IMG/VR virus record: IMGVR_UViG_3300005613_000001
Coordinates: 463,113-527,112 of that record
Strand: one strand, 5' to 3'
DNA: 64,000 nucleotides
Of the stretch, positions 7-55,813 are shown in pieces. The translations under genes were made by a program, and so were the position numbers. Each line of letters opens with the position of its first letter. Within the stretch, counting starts at the first letter, position 1. The notes under the pieces were generated by a model. That model did no database searches and was not told where the DNA came from. It worked only from the letters and a program-made list of their open reading frames with translations.

Positions 7-876
7 GTGGAAATCGGGTTCGGTATTTTCGGCTCGGTGGCCGATATTACCCCCCAAATGGCGGAGGATTGGTTGGCTACCAACACCAACAATCGTCGGC
101 CAAAAGAACGCTCGATCAAGAAGTATTCGGGCGATATGGCTGAAGGCTACTGGCGGCTCACTCACGAAGCGGTCGCGTTCGGCTTGGATGGTGAACTGAA
201 GGACGGTCAAAACCGCCTCAAGGCGATTGTTCGTTCTAACCAGACCGTCCGTATGATGGTTGTGGTCGGCATTTGCGACGAGGCGAAAGCCGTCATTGAC
301 CAGAACGTTCCCCGCACACCGCTGGATGCCGCCCGCTTTCAGGGGGTGGATGTTGGTCCCAATTCCCGCACCCGCATCGGTGGCGCTAAAATCGCCTATG
401 TTGGGATGAAGGGTCAGTCATTCAGCGTTTCGAACAGCAAGACCCTGGAATTGCTGGACGACTTCTGTGTGCCCCTGGATTTCGTTTGGGATCATCTTGA
501 TCGTGTCAAGGGTGTTTGCGTCGGCGGCGTGATCGGAGCCATCGTGCGGGCATACATCCACTGCCAGGACGATCCCAAGGCTATCGCCCGGCTCAAGCGA
601 TTCTGCGAAATCCTGAGTGACGGGCAGTACGGCAATGTGGACGCCGATGTTGCCGCCTTCCGCCTCCGCGAACGGCTGATGCAGAAGGAGCGTTACGGCA
701 GCACGGGCAGTAAGGAAGCCTACGCCCTGTGCGAAAAGGCGCTGATCTTGTTCTTGGATGGGAAAACCGTTAGCCGGTTGAACCCCGTCAAGGTCGAACA
801 GTTTCTCTTGGCCCACGAAGTGCCGCTCGATGAGTTGCACGAATTGCCCCTCGCGGCACAAAAGCGACGAGACTAA
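7..876 (+). CDS. ParB/Srx-like (DGQHR-type) domain protein, probably 5'-truncated by the window edge
   Basis: Motif NTNNRRP...Y..DM..G.W......VAF..DG.LKDGQNRL.AI; the frame is open back to base 1; visibly more GC-rich than the rest of the window. Confidence 0.6.
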   Translation: MEIGFGIFGSVADITPQMAEDWLATNTNNRRPKERSIKKYSGDMAEGYWRLTHEAVAFGLDGELKDGQNRLKAIVRSNQTVRMMVVVGICDEAKAVIDQNVPRTPLDAARFQGVDVGPNSRTRIGGAKIAYVGMKGQSFSVSNSKTLELLDDFCVPLDFVWDHLDRVKGVCVGGVIGAIVRAYIHCQDDPKAIARLKRFCEILSDGQYGNVDADVAAFRLRERLMQKERYGSTGSKEAYALCEKALILFLDGKTVSRLNPVKVEQFLLAHEVPLDELHELPLAAQKRRD

Positions 877-48663: not shown

Positions 48664-50283
48664 ATGAGAACATTTAAAGAATACGTTTCATTAAAAGAGG
48701 CGGCTGGAAAAGAGTCAAGCGGGGAGAATATTGTTGCCAAAAATACCACTATCTTAGGTAAAGATGAAGAAGGCGTTGAACCCTTCATGGTTGGCGCACA
48801 ATATAACCGGAAAAACCTTGGCACACTTGTTAAAGCATTTCTTGCCAGCCCCGAAGTAGAATTTGGTCCCAATATGCTTGATAGCAAAGCCACGACAAAC
48901 CCAGGGCAAAGCACAAGCGGTTTGACCAAAAACAAGCTAAAAAAGAAGACCTTGTATCTCGTTGGAGGGGCAGTAAGAGATCACATGTTGGGCCAAACCC
49001 CCAGTGATTATGACTTGGCTACCGATGCTACAATGGATGAAATCCGCCTCATTTTAAAACATGCTGGATTTGCAGAACTTAGACCACAAACTGCGGTGGA
49101 TAAGAAAAAAGAGGATAAAAAGCCTGATCCAAAATACGACAATCTCCCCGCTGCTTCTGATAATCCGAAAAAGTTCTATGTAAAAGGCACAGACATTAAA
49201 GGCACAGAATTCGTCATGGGAGCTAAAATTCATGGCGAAGAATTTGAAATTGCCACCTTTAGAAAAGATTCCAAAGGGGAAAGCGACGGTAGAACAACTC
49301 GTATGAGCTTCACACCCAAGCTTGAAGAGGACGCTGCAAGGCGTGATTTTACAGTCAATTCAATGTATATCCCACTAACAAGTGAGAATGGCCCAAATAA
49401 TAAATTAATTGATATTTATGGTGGGGTGAGAGACTTAAAACGCAAAAAAGTAAGATTCGTAGGCGATCCAAAAGAAAGATTAGAAGAAGATGAATTGCGG
49501 GCTCTTCGTTATGCTAGATTTGCCTCAATTTTTGAAGATTTGGACATGCCAGATGATATTGTAGATGCCATCGGACAAATGGCTGGACTTAAATCTCTAC
49601 AACCGTTCACTGATAAAGCAGGAAGGCAAAGAGATAGAAGAAAAAGAATTCGTGATGAATTCTTAAAAACAATGAAGAAGGCAAGTGTTAATCCTAAAAA
49701 ATACTTGATGGCGTTAAAAAGACTAGGATTAATACCAGCTATATTCCCTAATTTAAAAATTAGATTAGATGGGCCTGATGATATAAGCGATAAAAGAGAA
49801 AAACATTTAGCTATCGCCTGGTTGCTTAAAGACAATGATCCAGCTAGTGTTTATAGTATACTTACAGATGCACACTGGACTCAAGATGAAGCAAAGCGAA
49901 TTAGTTTTCTAATTAAATTCCTTCACTTCCACCCAGAAATTGATCCTGATAACCTCAACCAAATGTCTTCTGCTTTTATGAAAAGTGGCTTATCAAGTGG
50001 TTACCTCGGCGGAAAAGAAATGGGACAAAAATCACTACTTTCAACTTGGGCTCAAATGAATCCTGATAGATTCCCCGAAGGCTCTGTTGATGCTTTCTTG
50101 AAACACGTTAGCCACGGCCCAATTAAAGTATCCCATGAAGATCCAATGTTCGCTGATTTGTTCGTAGTTGATCCCTTCAGCGGCAAAAGGCGTGGAACAC
50201 CAGGCATTGCACAAAGACAAGCAGAATTGGCACATAAGAGATTTTTAGATATCTTTAAAAGCGGCCAAGCAAAAAATGTATGA
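48664..50283 (+). CDS. cca: Class II CCA-adding tRNA nucleotidyltransferase
   Basis: LYLVGGAVRD...DYDLAT, EIATFR, DAARRDFTVN, D..GG..DL, EDELRALRYARF; no HD domain; no poly(A)-polymerase G(R/K)(R/K)F signature. Confidence 0.9.
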   Translation: MRTFKEYVSLKEAAGKESSGENIVAKNTTILGKDEEGVEPFMVGAQYNRKNLGTLVKAFLASPEVEFGPNMLDSKATTNPGQSTSGLTKNKLKKKTLYLVGGAVRDHMLGQTPSDYDLATDATMDEIRLILKHAGFAELRPQTAVDKKKEDKKPDPKYDNLPAASDNPKKFYVKGTDIKGTEFVMGAKIHGEEFEIATFRKDSKGESDGRTTRMSFTPKLEEDAARRDFTVNSMYIPLTSENGPNNKLIDIYGGVRDLKRKKVRFVGDPKERLEEDELRALRYARFASIFEDLDMPDDIVDAIGQMAGLKSLQPFTDKAGRQRDRRKRIRDEFLKTMKKASVNPKKYLMALKRLGLIPAIFPNLKIRLDGPDDISDKREKHLAIAWLLKDNDPASVYSILTDAHWTQDEAKRISFLIKFLHFHPEIDPDNLNQMSSAFMKSGLSSGYLGGKEMGQKSLLSTWAQMNPDRFPEGSVDAFLKHVSHGPIKVSHEDPMFADLFVVDPFSGKRRGTPGIAQRQAELAHKRFLDIFKSGQAKNV

Positions 50284-51019
50284 ACTTAATGTCTTAACTT
50301 GTAGACCTGATTACTTTTATATCACCCTGGCATCTTTGTTGTCTTCCGATTGGACCGATGATATTAATATATGCCTGGGTGTGGCAAATGGAAGATATAT
50401 TACACAATACCTGCAAGAAGGTAGAATTAAATTAAGAAGATTACATACTAAAAAATCTTATGCTGAAATTAAAGAATGGTTGAAACAAAGACAAGCCTCT
50501 TGGAATTTCTCTAAAATATTAAGAGGCGCTAATAGAAATAAAAGGGGCATCTTTGTTCTTGAAGATGATATAATTCTAAATCCCGATTGGTTCGCACACG
50601 CACATGAAGTAATAAATGAAATAGAAAAAATATCAGATAAGTTCATTCTGTCCATATATAGCCCACATAGGAAAATGGAAGTGGGTGAAAACGGTTTCGC
50701 AGAATACCCAATTGATAGGTTCTTTGGCACGCAAGGGATGTATTACACTCCTTCTGTTGCAATTAAATTGGGGCGGTTCCTACGCGATGGTAATTACCAG
50801 CCAGGACATGATGTGATGATGCATGATTTTTGCAAAGATGAGAAAATAAAAGTGTATGTTCCAAACCGCATAACAATTCAACATATTGGTGAGAAATCAG
50901 CATTTCATGGCACCACGCTCAAAAAAGGACAAGGACCAGTACCCGGTTACTTGTGGCCGACAACTTACGAAATGCCACACTTCCACACTTCAAAGAAATA
51001 CAAGCATCAAAATCTCTAA
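50276..51019 (+). CDS. GT-A fold glycosyltransferase (GT25/GT2-like)
   Basis: IFVLEDDIIL, FGTQGMYY, D.MM, IQHIG. Confidence 0.7.
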   Translation: MYELNVLTCRPDYFYITLASLLSSDWTDDINICLGVANGRYITQYLQEGRIKLRRLHTKKSYAEIKEWLKQRQASWNFSKILRGANRNKRGIFVLEDDIILNPDWFAHAHEVINEIEKISDKFILSIYSPHRKMEVGENGFAEYPIDRFFGTQGMYYTPSVAIKLGRFLRDGNYQPGHDVMMHDFCKDEKIKVYVPNRITIQHIGEKSAFHGTTLKKGQGPVPGYLWPTTYEMPHFHTSKKYKHQNL

Positions 51020-51022
51020 TCG

Positions 51023-51063
51023 AAAAGAAAGACCCCTTATCGTTGTTTCCAACAATAAGGGGT
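51023..51063 (-). terminator. Intrinsic terminator ending the ncRNA transcript
   Basis: ACCCCTTATTGTTG-GAAA-CAACGATAAGGGGT then CTTTCTTTT on the minus strand. Confidence 0.88.
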
Positions 51064-52045
51064 ATTCCCAGCAAGCACGTTCAGGATTCAGCACTCGTTA
51101 GAATAACTAAACCCTCCATTGAGTTCCATCACCTTTTGCCAGTCTCCGCAGGTAGTGCTTACCTTGAGGCTTTTAACCTCACCGCACGCAATTGGTATAA
51201 CCTACGGCGTGATAGTTGTGGGTAGTTTACCTGTTACTTGAACTTTCCGTGCTTCTGATGATTAAATTCCAACATGCTGCTGTTACCACAGTTTAGCTGG
51301 GCCTAATCTCAGGGTGTCACTTGAGCCCTTATAACGGCTCTACTCCTCAACTTCCCATTTTGTTTCGTGGTTGGATTCCACGTCGTTTCTGAATGCCATT
51401 AGGTTGGCATTAGGCTCAACGTTGCTATACAGCCCGACGACTGTGCCCGATATTCTCGGGGGATTTGCTCACAAGCAACTGGCTGCTTGTGGTCTATCCC
51501 GCAACGTGCTAGGGTGTCAGTAAATCCTCAGTTTATCGGCACCAAGCGATCACTTGGCTCCGTATCCGACTGAAGATGCTGATGTTGGGCTGACTTTGTT
51601 CCTTGTCACATTTCTGCGCACAAGGTTTATGTGCCAATCCCACCCTCTAGACGCTTACCACGTTAAATTCGCCTGACTGACAGTTCAGACAAAACCTAAT
51701 ATGGTTGGAAGAGAGACCTACAAATTAATGCTGGGTAGCTGTCAACAACCCGTCTCTAATCCACGCCTCGCATCGAAGCCTGCCTGTGAGTATCCGGTTT
51801 GAATTCTCAGACTTTGCCGTTTCGGCGCTGTCTGTTTCATCATTCCGTGACTTCAAGCTAAAAGGCTCTTTAGAATACCCGTCCGAAGACAAGCTCCCTT
51901 GGATACCTCCGCCTGAGAGTCCCCACCCCTTTTTATGCGGATTGGGGTTTTGTACCCGTGGTCCTATTTTTCAAGAGCCATCGGGTTCCACAGGACTCCT
52001 TGAGGCCACTTACACTTTACAGTATAAGTGCGGAACTCAGTACCA
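51064..52045 (-). ncRNA. ~1-kb highly structured non-coding RNA (GOLLD/ROOL-class candidate)
   Basis: No credible minus-strand ORF; dense hairpins with GNRA/UUCG loops; long-range TGAGTTCC (52039-52032)/GGAACTCA (51127-51120) closing helix; boxA upstream, terminator downstream. Confidence 0.8.
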
Positions 52046-52048
52046 AAT

Positions 52049-52060
52049 TGTCAAAGATCA
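52049..52060 (-). promoter_or_regulatory. boxA antitermination element
   Basis: TGATCTTTGACA vs rrn boxA TGCTCTTTAACA. Confidence 0.75.
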
Positions 52061-52063
52061 AAG

Positions 52064-52235
52064 TGAACAGAGCAGGGCTTGCACCTGCATTTCCTGGTTT
52101 ATCTAGTAGTTAAACTAAATTCCCAAGCGTTCTACAAAATTGATACACCTGTTGGGGTGTCCTCTAATCTCAACTTACCGGAGGCAGTGATAAAATTAGA
52201 GGCGAGATCAACTCCGTTAATTGAACTATCTGTTC
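52064..52235 (-). ncRNA. tRNA-like RNA B (172 nt) with 90-nt D-loop domain and extended anticodon arm
   Basis: GAACAGA/TCTGTTC acceptor, U8A9, GTTC/GAAC D-stem, CTTGG/CCAGG stem, AAAT, GCAGG-TGCAAGC-CCTGC T-arm, A73. Confidence 0.8.
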
Positions 52236-52236
52236 A

Positions 52237-52368
52237 GGCGAACAGGGCAGGATTCTCACCTGCATTTCCGGTAGCGGTGCTTTGGACAACGCTTCCAGCG
52301 TTTTGCACTATTCACTTGACACTGCCGGATGGCCGAGCAACTAATTAGTGCAGTTAAACTACCTGTTC
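52237..52368 (-). ncRNA. tRNA-like RNA A (130 nt plus encoded CC) with 52-nt D-loop domain and extended anticodon arm
   Basis: GAACAGG/CCTGTTC acceptor, U8A9, GTTT/AAAC D-stem, CTGG/CCGG stem, AAAT, GCAGG-TGAGAAT-CCTGC T-arm, G73-C-C. Confidence 0.8.
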
Positions 52369-52380
52369 TTGTGTTTCGTT

Positions 52381-52512
52381 CCCAGCATTTTAACAAATCA
52401 TTTGGCTGTGTCAAGCCCAATTTTTTGTCCGGTCTGCTGAGTAACCTTTGCCTTCTTCTCTGTTCTGTGCCCAGCATTTTAACAAATCATTTGGCTGTGT
52501 CAAGCCCAATTT
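52381..52512 (-). promoter_or_regulatory. Tandem duplicated sigma70 promoters (43-bp exact direct repeat, 89-bp period)
   Basis: Each copy TTGACA-N16-TAAAAT with extended -10 TG; -35 at 52503-52498 and 52414-52409. Confidence 0.88.
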
Positions 52513-52529
52513 GTTCGGACTGCTGGTGA

Positions 52530-52835
52530 CCTTTTGCTAAATTTTTCTCAATTCACTTATCAACCGTAGTTGATGCATTGTGATTGCGAATGGCTTTAGC
52601 TGCCTGGGTTCCCTCCACATGATTGACAACTTTTCCGAAGAGGTTGTCACAGTTTTTTTTCAGGGCTCCTCTTGTACTCCGTTGCCACACGGGCGGGTTC
52701 CCAAATCTCTCAAGGTGGCTTTATGATAACGACTTCTCCTCTTCTGTCAAGGGCAGAAGTTTGGGGATCGCTGCCTCTCTCCCTAGAGGCAGCAATTCCC
52801 CAGGAGCGTTAAAGGCTTCCATCGCCACCGATTGT
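52530..52835 (-). ncRNA. Second structured ncRNA candidate (~300 nt)
   Basis: GGTGGC/GCCACC enclosing helix, 16-bp GGGGA..CCTCT/AGAGG..TCCCC hairpin, cUUCGg and cUACGg loops; preceded by boxA. Confidence 0.6.
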
Positions 52836-52836
52836 G

Positions 52837-52864
52837 TTTTCAAAGAACGTTTGCCCCGAAGGAC
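52837..52864 (-). promoter_or_regulatory. boxB-like hairpin plus boxA
   Basis: GTCC-TTCG-GGGC hairpin followed by CGTTCTTTGAAAA. Confidence 0.7.
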
Positions 52865-52908
52865 GAGAGCCAAGTATAGCGGTTTGCCAAATCCATGCAA
52901 CCCCAATT

Positions 52909-55164
52909 TCACCGCTTGGAGGACTTTTTCTTGGAGAAGCGTAGCTTTTTAAATTTTCTACGCATATTGTCTTTTTTGTCTATCTCACCAGGAGGGTCGG
53001 AGTCACCGCATTGTCCCCTAAATGCCCCGCTTCCATCACCACTAGAAGAAAATGTATTCAGATCACCGTCTTCCCAAAAGCGGTTTTCTCCAAGACTACC
53101 GAGGAACTCACTATGATGTTTCCGAATATCAGCAGCATCTTTGGAACTAATTATACCTAATTTCTGTTGAAAGTCTATCCAATCACTAAGGGCTTCGCCT
53201 CCCCATGATATTCTTTCAAACCCGCTTAGTTTATTAAGAGGTTTAAACCGTACTGCTTTATCAATATGGTCTAACTTTTCTTCTCCTGGGTAGTTAATTT
53301 GGAAGAATTTTTTAGCCCTACGAATATTTGGTACAAATGCCTGGCCGTAAGATTTCCTGTCAGGAAGCTCATCTGATTCCATTGCATCGTGAAGATGCTT
53401 AAGCCTTCTTAAGAATTCGGACATATACACTTTCATGTCGGCATCTTGCATTGCTTGATCGTAAAACCTTTTAAGTATTTGACGATTATTCAAGGATGGT
53501 TTTTCTTTTGTTAATTTTCGCCAAGAATAAACTAAGTGTATTGCATGTGTTGTCTGTCTTATTGCTCTTTTTTCCCAATCTTCACGCTTTGAATCTACTG
53601 CCGCCTCTATTACTTCAAGCGTTTTCCTTAGAGTTGTTTCCAAAGAATGTTTTGTCATTTCCTCTGTGGTGCCTCTAATTGAAGAGCGATTTTTATAACC
53701 GGATGATCTACCATAGGAAACTATACTGTGAGCGCCTCTGTCTTCATCCCAATAATCAGCTTCATCTTTTAGATTGTTAAACCAATCATTGAATTCCCCG
53801 GTTAATTCAACCGAATCACTTATATCAAAATCTTGAGGAAGTCCTTTCCGTTTCCTCCACTCCGCCTTTAGGAAACTTTTCCACAAATTCATATCCCAAA
53901 GATATTCATTAGAAACTTTATATTGTCTTCTAAATTGATCTGCTAATTGGGCATATTTCAAACTAGGTCGTCCTTCAACTTGTTTATGTGTAGGATTTTC
54001 AAAGTTTGGAACTGTTGCAACGTGTTCCCAAGTACCAGGCGTAAGAAAAACAGCTTGCGTTGGCTCAGACGCATAAATAGTATCCGTCCCTATATCAGAG
54101 ATCCCAGAGACTCCCATTTTTCTTAGAATAGCTGACCACGTAATCCACGGGCGAGTATCACTAAGTTTGTCTGACCATCGTTTTGCCACCTGATAGAGAA
54201 CACCTATATCTGAATTGAAGCTATTTGATTTCACCCATTCTTTTGTTTTCTCAAAATCAACCTCAGGATGTTTTTCAGCAAATTTTTTCAACACATCCTC
54301 AAAAGGAATTCTACCCTGTTTACCCCTTTTGATTAATCTTTTTACATGCGTCCAATATTCTTTAAGTGTCTTGTTTATAAAGCGTATTGATTTTTCGCCA
54401 AGATTTTCTTCAATATCTAAATACTCACTGTTTTTCAAAATATCCCAAAAACCATCAACAAGCTCGTCCCAATTCACCTTTTTTATATCTCTAATAGAAC
54501 CAGACAAAGTAAGACTTTTATAAAGTGACTGCTGTAATGAATCTAGTGCTCTTGCTATCACTTGATACCATTGAACTTCATCCCTGGGTTCTCCAAAAAA
54601 CTCCTCAAGGTCTTCATTTTCTATTTTCCACACTTTCTGTAAGTGCTTAGAGATAACCATTCTATACTGATTTAACAAATACAAAGGATCTCGCCCGGCA
54701 TTGATAGACGAAGTTTGCATCATCTTGCCTTTATCATTCTTCTTCTTTGTTATTAAGACTTGAATCCAAGGCTTAGCAGAGGCAAACAAATCATCTGGGT
54801 TATCTCTCATCATTTTGATTGCATAACGAATTGGATATGCATAAAGACCTATAGGCGTCTCTGTCCATGTTGTCTTGGGATTAATGCCTAATTTTTCAAG
54901 ATCAGTGAAACTAACCCATATTTCCTTGGGATGTACACCTTTAGTTTTTAAAGCTTTTTTAATAAACTCTAAATGTGTTATTCTTTCATCATAACGATAT
55001 GTCCGCCCCGTTTTTGGATTGATAAGAGGGTGTTTCACATGGGCGGGAACTATCTTCTTTTGACCTTCTAAGATAGACTCAATGAGCATCTCCATCTCCG
55101 TGTTGTGGAGATCAAGTAAAATGTCCTCACATTCGGAGGTTATTAAATACTCAGAGAACTTCAT
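52909..55164 (-). CDS. Large probable virion internal protein (start reassigned to MKFSEYL)
   Basis: ATG at 55164 preceded by TATAAATA; capsid-targeting-like start; KLGINP..TP.G.Y.YP and GVSGISD.G...EPTQAVF motifs. Confidence 0.7.
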   Translation of the reverse strand: MKFSEYLITSECEDILLDLHNTEMEMLIESILEGQKKIVPAHVKHPLINPKTGRTYRYDERITHLEFIKKALKTKGVHPKEIWVSFTDLEKLGINPKTTWTETPIGLYAYPIRYAIKMMRDNPDDLFASAKPWIQVLITKKKNDKGKMMQTSSINAGRDPLYLLNQYRMVISKHLQKVWKIENEDLEEFFGEPRDEVQWYQVIARALDSLQQSLYKSLTLSGSIRDIKKVNWDELVDGFWDILKNSEYLDIEENLGEKSIRFINKTLKEYWTHVKRLIKRGKQGRIPFEDVLKKFAEKHPEVDFEKTKEWVKSNSFNSDIGVLYQVAKRWSDKLSDTRPWITWSAILRKMGVSGISDIGTDTIYASEPTQAVFLTPGTWEHVATVPNFENPTHKQVEGRPSLKYAQLADQFRRQYKVSNEYLWDMNLWKSFLKAEWRKRKGLPQDFDISDSVELTGEFNDWFNNLKDEADYWDEDRGAHSIVSYGRSSGYKNRSSIRGTTEEMTKHSLETTLRKTLEVIEAAVDSKREDWEKRAIRQTTHAIHLVYSWRKLTKEKPSLNNRQILKRFYDQAMQDADMKVYMSEFLRRLKHLHDAMESDELPDRKSYGQAFVPNIRRAKKFFQINYPGEEKLDHIDKAVRFKPLNKLSGFERISWGGEALSDWIDFQQKLGIISSKDAADIRKHHSEFLGSLGENRFWEDGDLNTFSSSGDGSGAFRGQCGDSDPPGEIDKKDNMRRKFKKLRFSKKKSSKR

Positions 55165-55169
55165 AAAAA

Positions 55170-55177
55170 TATTTATA
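55170..55177 (-). promoter_or_regulatory. T4-type late promoter motif
   Basis: Exact TATAAATA 5 nt upstream of the ATG at 55164. Confidence 0.5.
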
Positions 55178-55309
55178 GTTTGGCACTCAATTTGCGTCCA
55201 AATTAACTTAATTAAATTAGCTGTCAATATGGCAGCTAGAAGCCTAGACCTTGTAGGATGGGCTAACTGGACGTAGTTACGACAGTTTTTATAGAAAGAG
55301 AGGTATAGT

Positions 55310-55813
55310 ATGTTACGTCGCAATCGTCATGGGCATGGACACGGTAGATGCCGAAATGATTTTCTTTTCCCAATTGAAACGCAACTCAATAAGCTTTTTG
55401 ACCAATTCTTTGAAAGTGATGGTTTAAAAGATTCTGTCAAATCAACTCAGGGATATCCAAAAATGGATGTTATTGAAGATGATAATTGTTTGCAATTCAA
55501 ATTGGCGGTTCCTGGTGTGAAGTTAGATGATCTTCAAATTGAAGTTGAGGACTTTTTGGACAGGGTATCGCCCCATAGAATTTTAACAATCTCGGGTAAA
55601 ATGTCGGAAGAGTACGCTTCAAAAGATGATGCTGTATTCCACATCAGAGAACTAAGACACTCCCAATTCCAGAGAGTGCTTCAAATTCCTGATCTTGTAG
55701 AAGGAGAACCTGAAGCTGAACTTCATGATGGCATTTTGGTTCTCAAATGGAAAATCAAAAAGGAAGAATTGCCTCCTACAAAGAAAGCAATTCCAATTAA
55801 AACTACTGAATAA
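55310..55813 (+). CDS. hsp20: Small heat-shock protein Hsp20
   Basis: YPKMDV.E......VPGV...DL.I.....L.ISG...ELR.S.F.R....P.....A.L.DGIL.L. Confidence 0.95.
   Translation: MLRRNRHGHGHGRCRNDFLFPIETQLNKLFDQFFESDGLKDSVKSTQGYPKMDVIEDDNCLQFKLAVPGVKLDDLQIEVEDFLDRVSPHRILTISGKMSEEYASKDDAVFHIRELRHSQFQRVLQIPDLVEGEPEAELHDGILVLKWKIKKEELPPTKKAIPIKTTE

Follow-up and report, generated by a model that had tools for sequence, protein, structure and literature searches.

A conserved, rRNA-operon-like cluster of non-coding RNAs carrying a host-type boxA element in a 527-kb phage likely to infect Planctomycetota

Can a phage arrange its non-coding RNA genes in the manner of its host's rRNA operons? The question is raised by a cluster at positions 51020-52908, on the minus strand, of a 64,000-nucleotide stretch of a 527-kb phage genome (IMG/VR record IMGVR_UViG_3300005613_000001, positions 463,113 to 527,112), here referred to as the window. 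The cluster is non-coding and without a match to any Rfam family. Tandem P1/P2 promoters as well as leader and spacer boxA sites that recruit NusB, NusE and NusG are hallmarks of rrn operons, in which the antitermination complex comprises NusA, NusB, NusE, NusG, SuhB and S4. A first-pass annotation, made from the sequence alone, had read such an architecture in the cluster and proposed that host rRNA antitermination is borrowed for the mass production of its RNAs as one processed precursor, implying high abundance and a structural or decoy role. Having followed up these claims, we favour, by a modest margin, the reading that a huge phage carries here a conserved operon of non-coding RNAs whose organisation and expression resemble those of a host rRNA/tRNA operon.

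All features listed in the first-pass annotation were found on the minus strand, none more than a few bases from where it had placed them: the hairpin, the pair of boxA words, the promoters, the tRNA-like RNAs A and B, the giant RNA and the terminator (Table 1). Two extra conserved promoter-like sites that it had missed, P0 and P0', complete this anatomy. The unit closes with a GC-rich hairpin and a U tract (14-bp stem plus U tract, 51063-51032), as is required of an intrinsic terminator, and the stem is kept in a related phage via compensatory changes. No matches to SSU, LSU or 5S rRNA were found in the window or the phage genome, so the locus cannot be said to encode rRNA, and BLAST of the cluster against planctomycete 16S, 23S and 5S rRNAs returned short words only. 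Nor was a tmRNA detected in the window or genome by ARAGORN or Rfam. The cluster resembles an rrn operon in its working, a functional likeness in which the recruitment of Nus factors is inferred, yet it is not an rRNA operon.

Table 1. Features of the RNA cluster and the neighbouring CCA-adding enzyme gene, in window coordinates
Feature	Position	Strand	Description
P0, leader promoter-like site	52900-52873	-	-35 TTGCAT (52900-52895), 16-nt spacer, -10 TATACT (52878-52873)
Leader hairpin	52864-52853	-	GUCC-UUCG-GGGC; boxB-like placement, where the P0 transcript is predicted to begin
boxA1	52848-52836	-	GTTCTTTGAAAAC; boxA-like word after the leader hairpin
S1, structured leader RNA	52835-52513	-	16-bp hairpin (52800-52763), P0' (52750-52723) and a 65-nt block
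P0', internal promoter-like site in S1	52750-52723	-	TTGACA-16-TATCAT
P1, first 43-bp promoter repeat	52512-52470	-	TTGACA 52503-52498, TG-TAAAAT ending 52476
P2, second 43-bp promoter repeat	52423-52381	-	predicted start ~52380, 12 nt before tRNA-like A
tRNA-like A	52368-52239	-	cloverleaf-shaped RNA beginning ~12 nt past the start predicted from P2
A-B spacer hairpins	52200-52145	-	include ACACC-CCAACA-GGUGU (52160-52145), identical in the relative
tRNA-like B	~52135-52063	-	three-armed: acceptor-like stem, one arm, T arm
boxA2	52059-52041	-	GATCTTTGACAATTTGGTA; starts 4 nt past the discriminator base of B
Giant RNA	52040 to ~51071	-	stable, highly structured non-coding product of the cluster, ~970 nt long
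Intrinsic terminator	51063-51022	-	14-bp stem, GAAA loop, U-rich tail CUUUCUUUUC
CCA-adding enzyme (tRNA nucleotidyltransferase) gene	48664..50283	+	one gene from the cluster; syntenic in the relative

A related contig (L153 and L149), about 84% identical over the part from B to the terminator, keeps the full order of leader promoter, hairpin, boxA1, S1, P1-type promoters, A, B, boxA2, giant RNA and terminator. Synteny in related phages had been proposed as a check on the cluster, and the whole layout is preserved here together with the CCA-adding enzyme gene. Compensatory changes, counted between this phage and the one relative and compared with a permutation null, exceed that null significantly in the giant RNA, A, B and S1. 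Double-compensatory pairs number 18 in the giant RNA (null 4.5; 348 predicted pairs), 5 in A (null 1.5; 45 pairs), 3 in B (null 0.3; 24 pairs) and 9 in S1 (null 4.0), and the corresponding broken pairs are 26 (null 53), 1 (null 8.0), 0 (null 3.0) and 17 (null 28.8). Every module is conserved and shows covariation. As the relative's locus was itself found by a search with boxA2, the test of conservation is independent for boxA1 only. Elsewhere, the protein of the 804-aa ORF that precedes the cluster has no close relatives and the contigs encoding weak matches to it show no RNA cluster, and neither the CCA-adding enzyme nor Hsp20 led to related viral loci when used as a query. Two contigs matching the promoter pattern (L154 and L155) proved unrelated, and L138 was rejected as a fragment of the related phage. 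As far as these searches reach, the giant RNA is known only from one narrow lineage of huge phages.

The link to host rRNA synthesis lies in boxA2, which is an exact copy of a 19-nt element of Planctomycetota rRNA leaders and tRNA arrays. More than 120 matches to this 19-mer were obtained in species genomes, and about 72 of the 80 listed carry a Planctomycetota label. Among 18 loci scanned, it lies upstream of 16S in three, upstream of 23S in four and inside tRNA arrays in seven, always on the same strand; in Planctomycetota the distance is 150-360 nt from 16S (L023, L053, L019) and 23S (L063, L015, L021, L032). In host 16S leaders the element follows the -10 of a promoter-like site by 37-42 nt and a hairpin by 3-4 nt, hence inside the transcript and in the classical hairpin-boxA arrangement. 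The word also meets the E. coli rrn boxA consensus (UGCUCUUUAACAA, core UCUUU), and boxA2 (UGAUCUUUGACAAUUUG) matches the boxA-spacer of E. coli rrnG (UGCUCUUUAACAAUUUA) at 14 of 17 positions (PMC2724277, Table 1). Within the phage genome a 17-mer of boxA2 has three copies, with 0, 0 and 1 mismatches (the next best sites have 3-4), all adjoining RNA genes and on the RNA-gene strand; across these copies the length of the motif is given as 17-19 nt. The stretch around boxA2 (52068-52020) is the most conserved of the 5' half of the cluster, with an identity of 0.92 to the relative, in whose locus boxA2 and about 20 nt on either side are identical.

These observations make Planctomycetota the likely host of the phage, an assignment inferred from sequence. 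NusB was present in all five planctomycete genomes tested, and no NusB or S10 gene was found in the phage genome. That boxA2 acts as a Nus-recruiting antitermination element is inferred from its sequence and the host motif, in the absence of NusB-NusE binding or read-through data; boxA function in Planctomycetota lacks experimental evidence, and no description of a planctomycete boxA was found in the literature searched. The element is common to many planctomycete phages and large planctomycete tRNA arrays; in other planctomycete phage contigs it lies within tRNA arrays and also precedes protein genes.

The second boxA word, boxA1, is conserved but departs from the host element. It is identical at 13 of 13 positions in the related phage despite an adjoining 1-nt insertion, a 9-nt deletion and diverged flanks, and in the form GUUCUUUGAAAAC it fits the pattern G-N-UCUUUGA-M-AA with the UCUUUGA-AA core kept. 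Several positions differ from the host 19-mer, and the word was not found in the planctomycete loci where that 19-mer was examined; matching a host rRNA leader is thus achieved by boxA2 and not by boxA1. The word is also that of a Mollicutes 16S-23S spacer PCR primer (PMC3019172). The hairpin before boxA1 reads GUCC-UUUG-GGGC in the related phage, and a hairpin 3-4 nt before boxA is seen in host 16S leaders as well. Downstream, S1 folds with z = -3.4 to -3.5; its 65-nt block (52680-52615) is nearly invariant between the two phages, and the stem of its 16-bp hairpin is wholly swapped in the relative for a different complementary stem. S1 was absent from all RNA runs examined. One observation counts against the main explanation: the leader hairpin after boxA1 in the relative looks like an intrinsic terminator, and rrn antitermination affects Rho-dependent terminators only (PMC2724277).

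The leader promoter P0 sits just past the stop codon of the 804-aa ORF. It was read from the sequence and scores under the threshold of the consensus promoter scan; both hexamers are identical in the related phage and the spacer differs. P1 and P2 are identical 43-bp copies 89 bp apart, each a TTGACA-16-TAAAAT site with a TG extension, and the 43-mer does not occur again in the 527-kb genome. The 89-bp unit bearing P1 is missing from the relative, in which the P2 site keeps its promoter, with conserved hexamers and a variable spacer, and a second promoter copy lies about 240 nt farther upstream of the one before A. The identical 89-bp tandem is reported on this basis, that is, against one related contig, as a duplication specific to this phage. 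A consensus scan of the minus strand from P2 to the terminator found no promoter-like site, which was counted in favour of a single precursor. The phage has two sigma factors (sigma-70-family proteins), so an unrecognised phage-specific promoter near boxA2 is not excluded.

The architectural claims of the first-pass annotation can be judged at this point. The notion of an rRNA-operon-like phage cluster with host antitermination signals has largely held, backed by the host motif, conservation and abundance. Its boxA-like words were to be discarded if not conserved in homologous loci, and they survive because both are kept in the locus of the related phage while the flanks have diverged. The tandem of identical promoters is real as a sequence, but the exact tandem is specific to this phage and not kept in the relative; the starts at about 52470 and 52381 stay predictions.

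tRNA-like A has a geometry of the cloverleaf type (7/2/4/.../1/.../4/5+7/7). Its 7-bp acceptor stem (GAACAGG/CCUGUUC) is followed by U8-A9, a 4-bp D stem enclosing a hairpin of about 50 nt, an 'anticodon' arm of 11 bp with a 5-nt loop, a 4-nt variable loop and a T arm whose 5-bp stem carries the 7-nt loop UGAGAAU, fitting the U-G-N-R-A T-loop pattern; the discriminator G is followed by CC-U. The fold is stable (z = -3.6), and the acceptor and T stems are altered by compensation in the relative. A meets the definition of a tRNA-like structure used here (stacked acceptor and T stems, connectors, discriminator and trailer), although its cleavage has not been assayed. B meets it only in part, having three arms and an acceptor stem of 5 bp. 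Its thermodynamic support is weak by itself (z = -0.65); its T arm, GCAGG-UGCAAGC-CCUGC, has the stem GCAGG/CCUGC here and GUAGG/CCUAC in the relative, and the discriminator A is followed by C-U.

Neither element is a tRNA proper. ARAGORN called no tRNA in the window, A and B included, and the Rfam tRNA model failed to match in both the window (E up to 10) and the relative (gathering thresholds). With all detectors negative, an 'anticodon' loop in A of 5 nt instead of 7, and T loops (UGAGAAU and UGCAAGC) that are not the canonical UUCRANY, this identity was rejected. The 3' trailer N73-C(C)-U of A and B is the signature of nearly all of the 59 phage tRNAs, none of which encodes its CCA, and A and B lack it likewise. 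The phage tRNAs include suppressors for UAG and UAA. Kin elements with a GGAAAUGCAGGUG...CCUGC T arm stand solitary after promoters in other viral contigs (L004, L002/L006), and the T-arm word is absent from five planctomycete genomes. The D arm of A shares 13 nt of complementarity with the giant RNA, but this was dismissed as being at chance level, about 1.3 such pairs being expected.

Folded from the minus strand, the giant RNA has a minimum-free-energy z of -7.1, compared with -2.4 for the plus strand and about 0 for coding controls. Its core (51524-51375) shares 94-98% identity with the relative, whereas the aligned 4-kb stretch as a whole reaches 78%, and a conserved unpaired palindrome, GAAUUC, lies within GAGAAUUCAAAC at about 51795-51784. 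Spurious ORFs in the region reach 109 aa. Indels with a length divisible by three are rare (1 of 20 in alignment A1, 1 of 14 in A2), substitutions by codon position (42/47/45) show no periodicity, and no long ORF appears in the region under any stop-codon reassignment. The region's ORFs are not conserved in the relative, and a 106-aa ORF inside the giant RNA had no match in the protein database, not even to itself.

At least 19 RNA runs, drawn from several studies, contain the giant RNA. In two metatranscriptome assemblies of separate studies it forms one contig of 970 nt with 1 mismatch and another of 972 nt with 97% identity. The two share their ends, at 52040, 1 nt past boxA2, and at about 51071, roughly 8 nt before the terminator stem. 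The RNA is a discrete and abundant species of about 970 nt. In the runs with these contigs, the flanks at 49500-51000 and 52100-54500 have zero depth, and the part of the cluster upstream of the giant RNA, including A and B, was seen in DNA runs only; small RNAs are lost from long-RNA libraries. The RNA evidence consists of assembled contigs and lacks strand and local depth. Direct evidence for a precursor is lacking, since no read was seen that spans B, boxA2 and the giant RNA. Two RNA variants, X5 and X10, at 97-98.5% identity, are too close to inform on covariation (of 13 changes at paired sites, 10 preserve the pairing and none is a double change); the 5'-terminal 29 nt of X5 fail to align with the window.

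Searches for the giant RNA elsewhere were negative within their scope. No Rfam family matched it in the window at E up to 10 with permissive filters, or in the relative at gathering thresholds. Blastn against GenBank phages and a 21-mer search of IMG/VR returned nothing, a 23-mer search of JGI metagenome contigs returned only a duplicate of the window's own contig, and a BLAST comparison with 5 complete and 401 sampled Planctomycetota genomes produced chance words only. When five large phage records with boxA and 24 loci were searched with a covariance model of the conserved core, only the two known copies were recovered, and no description of the RNA was found in the literature searched.

The following route would account for these findings. 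Host RNA polymerase would start at several sigma-70-type promoters (P0, P0' and P1/P2), and the nascent RNA would bear the leader hairpin and boxA1 and then, right before the large RNA, boxA2, the boxA of host rRNA leaders. The boxA elements may recruit host NusB, NusE (S10), NusG and NusA, for which there are no binding data, giving the polymerase Rho resistance over a long untranslated transcript; the Nus complex may also aid co-transcriptional folding, as in rrn operons. A and B would be recognised by RNase P and RNase Z, and perhaps by the phage CCA-adding enzyme, so that the precursor is cut. The leader, including boxA2, and the terminator hairpin would be trimmed off, and the compactly folded RNA of about 970 nt would build up to high levels.

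Several steps of this route remain inferred, among them the processing by RNase P and RNase Z. Of the first-pass claims about expression, high abundance held for the giant RNA as a discrete species of 970-972 nt, and the upstream modules are absent from RNA runs. The single precursor, and with it co-transcription, is inferred only, there being no bridging reads, and so is host Nus recruitment, for which boxA2 is the host element and boxA1 is off the host consensus. The structural or decoy role remains a guess; the function of the giant RNA is inferred, and it probably serves, as a GOLLD/ROOL-type RNA, in a structural or scaffold role.

Among alternative explanations, it is possible that A and B are functional products themselves, either as decoys or substrates of host defences or enzymes directed at tRNAs or as partners of the CCA-adding enzyme, with the giant RNA merely co-expressed. 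In support, the extra arms of A (the D-arm insertion and the 11-bp arm) are conserved with compensation, beyond what a cleavage signal needs, the kin T-arm elements stand alone in other viral contigs, and the CCA-adding gene is syntenic. Against it, no RNA run contains A or B, with the caveat about small RNAs given above. This reading is compatible with the main explanation and does not exclude it.

A less likely alternative divides the cluster into separate units: P0 would produce a short leader RNA, P1/P2 only the tRNA-like RNAs, and the giant RNA would start from its own phage-sigma promoter overlapping TCTTTGACAATTTGGTA, a motif that would then be a DNA promoter element, containing TTGACA, and not an RNA boxA. 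The motif does include a -35 hexamer without mismatch, the RNA contig begins 1 nt past the motif, the phage encodes two sigma-70-family proteins, the copy at G000 134429 comes after a terminator-like hairpin, and the upstream RNAs are unseen in RNA runs. However, host 16S leaders place the motif within the transcript, 37-42 nt past the -10, and none of the three phage copies has a -10 hexamer at 16-18 nt. A start 1 nt past a -35-like hexamer block suits no geometry of the sigma-70 family, and the motif agrees at 14 of 17 positions with an RNA element of E. coli that consists of boxA and the NusA-binding spacer. We regard this reading as unlikely.

It is very unlikely that the giant RNA is a divergent GOLLD, ROOL, OLE, group II intron, RNase P, tmRNA or rRNA missed by the models. 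Its setting is shared with GOLLD and ROOL (phage or prophage, near tRNAs, high expression; 10.1101/2024.12.08.627333, PMC5737381), but no Rfam match was found in the window (E up to 10) or the relative (gathering thresholds), and similarity to planctomycete 16S, 23S and 5S is limited to short words. That the region codes for small proteins, perhaps in a recoded genetic code, is suggested by the UAG and UAA suppressor tRNAs and the ORFs of up to 109 aa, and is all but excluded by the lack of a long ORF under reassigned stops, of indels mostly in multiples of three, of codon periodicity, of ORF conservation in the relative and of a database match for the 106-aa ORF.

The preferred reading, an operon working like those for host rRNA, can be compared with known systems. 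Like rrn operons, the cluster has multiple strong sigma-70-type promoters, a hairpin and then boxA soon after the start, a second boxA right before the large RNA which is letter for letter the element upstream of planctomycete 16S and 23S, tRNA-shaped spacer modules, a terminal terminator and a long untranslated, highly structured product whose ends are inferred to be processed. Unlike them, it is phage-encoded and contains no rRNA, its product is a novel 970-nt RNA, its 'spacer tRNAs' are not decodable, boxA1 is off the host consensus, and no long leader-trailer stem of the RNase III type was found around the product. Lambdoid nut sites (boxA and boxB with N protein) and the put RNAs of HK022 are likewise phage transcripts bearing a host Nus-recognition element, through which the phage gains processive transcription. 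Lambda nut, however, combines a weakened boxA with its own N protein on mRNA operons, whereas here a full host rrn-type boxA stands before a non-coding cargo and no N-like partner is known for the phage. To our knowledge, no earlier case is known in which a phage, as this one appears to do, reuses the exact rRNA-leader boxA of its host for a non-coding RNA operon.

The likeness to GOLLD and ROOL concerns the product: large, with a complex fold, phage- or prophage-encoded and next to tRNA genes. ROOL, 581 nt long on average, reportedly reaches the abundance of 16S rRNA; many GOLLD members are longer than 800 nt, some with embedded or adjacent tRNAs, and the function of both is unknown (10.1101/2024.12.08.627333, PMC5737381). 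The giant RNA meets the traits of this style (a large conserved fold in a phage, beside tRNA-like genes and enriched in metatranscriptomes), a functional resemblance only. It is longer than the typical sizes reported for both, and neither the GOLLD (RF01998) nor the ROOL (RF03087) model matched in the window (gathering thresholds and E up to 10) or in L149/L153 (gathering thresholds). In MALAT1/mascRNA and mitochondrial 'tRNA punctuation', tRNA-shaped elements also lie in a long precursor. These elements recruit RNase P or RNase Z, which define the ends of the long non-coding RNA, and the tRNA-like piece may receive CCA; unlike in these eukaryotic systems, the tRNA-like modules here lie 5' of the long RNA, and their cleavage by these enzymes is inferred.

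A bolder reading, possible but less likely than not, is that the giant RNA is the founder of a new class of giant structured RNAs in huge Planctomycetota phages. In this view it would be made during infection, at rRNA-like levels, by taking over the entire rRNA-synthesis route of the host (rrn-type promoters, the boxA/Nus antitermination-and-folding complex and tRNA-processing enzymes), and would form an RNA-only or ribosomal-protein-binding particle, which may be a cage, a scaffold or a ribosome-directed decoy. The GAAUUC palindrome and the conserved core would be its candidate contact sites.

Large ornate non-coding RNAs are rare, and the functions of GOLLD, ROOL and OLE are long-standing puzzles. 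With this analysis a candidate consensus for the planctomycete boxA element is gained, and an uncultured 527-kb phage receives a sequence-based host assignment to Planctomycetota. The locus adds a new large RNA with clear boundaries, evidence of natural abundance and a conserved expression cassette that hints at how it may be produced.

All of the elements that the first-pass annotation had listed for the RNA cluster were confirmed on the minus strand, and two further promoter-like sites, P0 and P0', were identified beyond that list (table). P1 and P2 each have the layout TTGACA-16-TAAAAT with a TG extension, and their 43-mer is unique in the phage genome. The G+C content of the cluster is 46-48%, against about 39% in its surroundings. 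A protein-coding reading of the region is ruled out because no long ORF exists under any stop-codon reassignment, only 1/20 and 1/14 of the indels that separate it from a related phage are divisible by three, and the substitutions lack codon periodicity. Searches with Rfam and ARAGORN, permissive thresholds included, recognised no RNA in the region. The virus record in IMG/VR (527,112 bp, G+C 41%), whose final 64 kb form the window, encodes 59 tRNA genes, among them UAG and UAA suppressors with anticodons CTA and TTA, as well as tail and baseplate genes and two sigma-70-family genes. An ORF at window 7-876 on the plus strand has a G+C content of 55.6%, compared to about 40% in the rest of the phage, and may have been gained recently from a donor richer in G+C, for example the host.

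Features of the RNA cluster, its flanks and the further boxA copies (window positions unless prefixed G000, the whole phage genome)
Feature	Position	Strand	Remark
P0 promoter-like site	52900-52873	minus	
Leader hairpin GUCC-UUCG-GGGC	52864-52853	minus	
boxA1 GTTCTTTGAAAAC	52848-52836	minus	3' of leader hairpin
P0' promoter-like site	52750-52723	minus	
P1, 43-bp promoter repeat	52512-52470	minus	identical to P2
P2, 43-bp promoter repeat	52423-52381	minus	identical to P1
tRNA-like A	52368-52239	minus	
tRNA-like B	about 52135-52063	minus	
boxA2	52059-52041	minus	
Terminator, 14-bp	51063-51032	minus	after giant RNA
Orphan 804-aa ORF	52909-55323	minus	one flank of RNA cluster 51020-52908
Orphan 247-aa ORF		plus	other flank; convergent
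CCA-adding enzyme gene	48664-50283		just beyond 247-aa ORF
Other 17-mer copies	G000:C1:320769-320785 and 134429-134445	minus	outside window

The second boxA, boxA2, lies within the 17-mer TCTTTGACAATTTGGTA, of which the phage genome holds three copies (mismatches 0, 0 and 1; next-best matches, 3-4), all on the minus strand and adjoining RNA genes, with the other two inside tRNA arrays. The 19-mer GRTCTTTGACAATTTGGTW was scanned across one genome per prokaryotic species and matched at least 120 stretches; about 72 of the 80 listed carried a Planctomycetota label, among them Pirellulales, Planctomycetales, Gimesia, Stieleria and Rhodopirellula. When 18 of these loci were scanned with Rfam, three carried the 19-mer 150-360 nt upstream of 16S and four carried it at that distance upstream of 23S, on the same strand; in seven more it was located between the tRNAs of very large tRNA arrays. 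In the 16S leaders it is preceded by a promoter-like -10 at 37-42 nt and by a hairpin at 3-4 nt, which is the classical boxB-boxA order. The phage RNA UGAUCUUUGACAAUUUG is identical at 14/17 positions to the E. coli rrnG boxA-spacer UGCUCUUUAACAAUUUA, the matched part including the NusA-binding spacer (PMC2724277). NusB was found in 5/5 planctomycete genomes tested, and a search of the phage for NusB and S10 genes found neither. Based on the 19-mer in Planctomycetota rRNA leaders and tRNA arrays, the rrnG match and the NusB distribution, boxA2 is very likely a genuine rrn-type boxA, namely the host's rRNA-leader element, and the host is most probably a planctomycete; NusB-NusE binding is inferred, without binding data. 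One further genomic copy lies 8 nt upstream of a tRNA-Ser-like gene missed by ARAGORN (about G000 320665-320760), and the other lies 3' of a tRNA-Ala and a terminator-like hairpin.

The 19-mer is also present in 18 IMG/VR stretches, mostly directly 3' of a tRNA in phage tRNA arrays and in some with boxA after a promoter and before protein genes. Use of the host boxA therefore seems general among these phages, as inferred from sequence alone. Three viral contigs (L141:1640-1830, L148:10560-10800 and L135:3190-3270) show a promoter and host boxA followed by protein-coding genes or short structured leaders, an arrangement similar to the lambda nut site but without a known N protein. Very large tRNA arrays with a tRNA-hairpin-boxA unit, packing dozens of tRNAs into 8 kb, are present in Planctomycetota genomes of Stieleria, Rubripirellula and their relatives (L029, L077, L039, L052, L036, L083 and L055); a mobile or prophage origin of these arrays is conceivable because near-identical arrays are listed as viral contigs (L139 and L146, IMG/VR). 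In another boxA-bearing phage contig (IMGVR_UViG_3300018080_000148), a bacterial small SRP RNA (L138:50-133; Rfam RF00169, 41.9 bits) adjoins a tRNA cluster; BLAST found no counterpart in the window's phage.

One of the 18 stretches (L149), together with L153, found with a promoter pattern, represents two pieces of a single 21,951-bp contig of a related phage, syntenic with window 53200-43200. Identity to the window is 60-95% in amino acids for neighbouring genes, about 84% from B to the terminator and 78% of columns upstream of B. The relative retains both tRNA-like RNAs, boxA2 and the sequence on either side of it, the giant RNA and the terminator; boxA1 is 13/13 identical, next to a 1-nt insertion and a 9-nt deletion. 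Both boxA words are thus kept; the first-pass annotation had held that a lack of their conservation in homologous loci would refute its reading, a check that is independent for boxA1 only, as L149 was found through boxA2. Both hexamers of P0 persist around a changed spacer, and also kept are the leader hairpin (loop UUCG to UUUG), the large hairpin of the structured leader RNA S1 (with an entirely different complementary stem), P0' and a nearly invariant 65-nt block. The tandem P1/P2 claimed earlier is present in the window, but the exact tandem is a recent duplication, since the 89-bp unit with P1 is absent from the relative, which has one P1-type promoter directly before A and a second about 240 nt further upstream instead; several promoters occur in both phages.

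Covariation was assessed on the minimum-free-energy structure of the window sequence, with a null obtained by permuting the relative's residues among columns sharing the same window base. The 348 predicted pairs of the giant RNA showed 18 double-compensatory changes (null 4.5 ± 1.9; maximum 11 in 2000) and 26 broken pairs (null 53 ± 3; minimum 42). Corresponding values were 5 (null 1.5) and 1 (null 8.0) for the 45 predicted pairs of A, 3 (0.3) and 0 (3.0) for the 24 of B, and 9 (4.0) and 17 (28.8) for the 102 of S1. In the relative, the large S1 hairpin followed by CAAUUUUUGG (L153:448-481) scores as an intrinsic terminator just past boxA1, the tail of its window counterpart not being U-rich; one lineage may thus possess a leader attenuator. 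On the plus strand, window 52624-52659, in the 65-nt block (52680-52615), reads as a strong intrinsic terminator (11-bp stem then T8), almost invariant between the two phages; it could halt antisense transcription that enters from the convergent genes of the plus strand, or serve as an RNA element within S1.

The predicted fold of A is a cloverleaf of tRNA-type geometry (7-bp acceptor stem, U8-A9, 4-bp D stem, 1-nt connector, 4-nt variable loop and 5-bp T stem with a 7-nt loop), departing from it in a hairpin of ~50 nt in place of the D loop and an 11-bp 'anticodon' arm with a 5-nt loop; this fold is unable to decode. The T loops of A and B fit U-G-N-R-A, not UUCRA. The T arm of A (window 52263-52245) GCAGGTGAGAATCCTGCCC has a 19-nt exact identity to a planctomycete 23S hairpin (L015 23S 1319-1337), which we take to be the counterpart of the E. 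coli GCGGGUGAAAAGCCCGC hairpin; we lean towards convergence on the T-loop fold, while capture from rRNA remains possible. CCA is encoded in 0/59 phage tRNAs, nearly all of which end in N73-C then U (T in DNA); A ends in G-CC-U and B in A-C-U. Such trailers are what would be expected if A and B underwent the 3'-end processing and CCA addition of the phage tRNAs, the processing being inferred. Stand-alone small RNAs in IMG/VR viral sequences (L004:7790-7885, L002:5880-5995 and L006) have an acceptor-like stem closing the same GGAAAUGCAGGUG-N5-CCUGC T arm, the RNA of L004 lying directly 3' of a TTGACA/TAGACT promoter, and a wider family of phage tRNA-shaped RNAs may exist.

The thermodynamic z-score of the giant RNA is -7.1 for the minus strand, compared to -2.4 for the plus strand and about 0 for coding controls, and its core (51524-51375) is 94-98% identical between the phages, compared to 78% over the aligned 4-kb stretch. 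At least 19 metatranscriptome runs contain the 1.85-kb stretch, drawn from several studies and from sediment, wetland, estuary and marine samples, and contigs of RNA runs were examined over window 49500-54500. Run X1 yielded one contig of 970 nt that spans precisely 51071-52040 and has one mismatch; X5, from another study, yielded a 972-nt contig at 97% identity, and the 29 and 12 nt left unaligned at its ends bring its termini to those same positions; X10 yielded a 402-nt piece. Flanking genes and the upstream part had zero depth in these RNA runs over this interval, and the upstream 819 nt were found in DNA runs only. From the contig ends and the zero-depth flanks, it therefore appears very likely that a discrete RNA of about 970 nt accumulates; the evidence consists of assembled contigs without strand or local depth, and hairpins can truncate assemblies. 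The 5' end falls 1 nt past boxA2 and the 3' end about 8 nt short of the terminator stem, and both appear to be processed. An unpaired, fully conserved segment (window 51784-51795, GAGAAUUCAAAC) with the palindrome GAAUUC is a possible kissing or dimerisation site, as a candidate only. The D-arm region of A (GGUAGUUUAACUG, 52351-52363) shows 12/13 complementarity to the giant RNA (CAGGUAAACUACC, 51221-51233); chance alone would give about 1.3 such 13-nt pairs in 2.1 kb.

The best reading of the cluster, held with moderate confidence, is an rrn-like production route in which Nus recruitment, a single precursor and RNase P/Z cleavage are inferred. Transcription would initiate at several sigma-70-type promoters, the boxA elements would recruit the host Nus complex for protection from Rho and possibly help with folding, RNase P/Z would cut the tRNA-shaped modules, leader and terminator would be trimmed off, and the giant RNA would build up. 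Between P2 and the terminator, a consensus scan detected nothing promoter-like, which fits a precursor begun at P1/P2 or upstream of them; bridging reads were not observed. The main rival, that the giant RNA has its own promoter overlapping the boxA2 motif, is unlikely, as the motif sits inside the leader in host rRNA leaders and no -10 occurs at a workable spacing from it.

As kinds, boxA antitermination, processing signals shaped like tRNAs and large ornate phage RNAs are already known; their combination and the RNA family are new. The family is narrow so far, its members being the phage of the window, a single relative at about 84% and the variants from RNA runs at 97-98.5%. Among conceivable roles for the giant RNA, whose function is unknown, that of a structural particle ranks as most likely, judged by analogy to GOLLD and ROOL, large RNAs that are phage-encoded, lie beside tRNAs, are very abundant and form RNA cages. 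That a phage should equip a non-coding operon with an exact copy of its host's rRNA-leader boxA likewise appears to be new.
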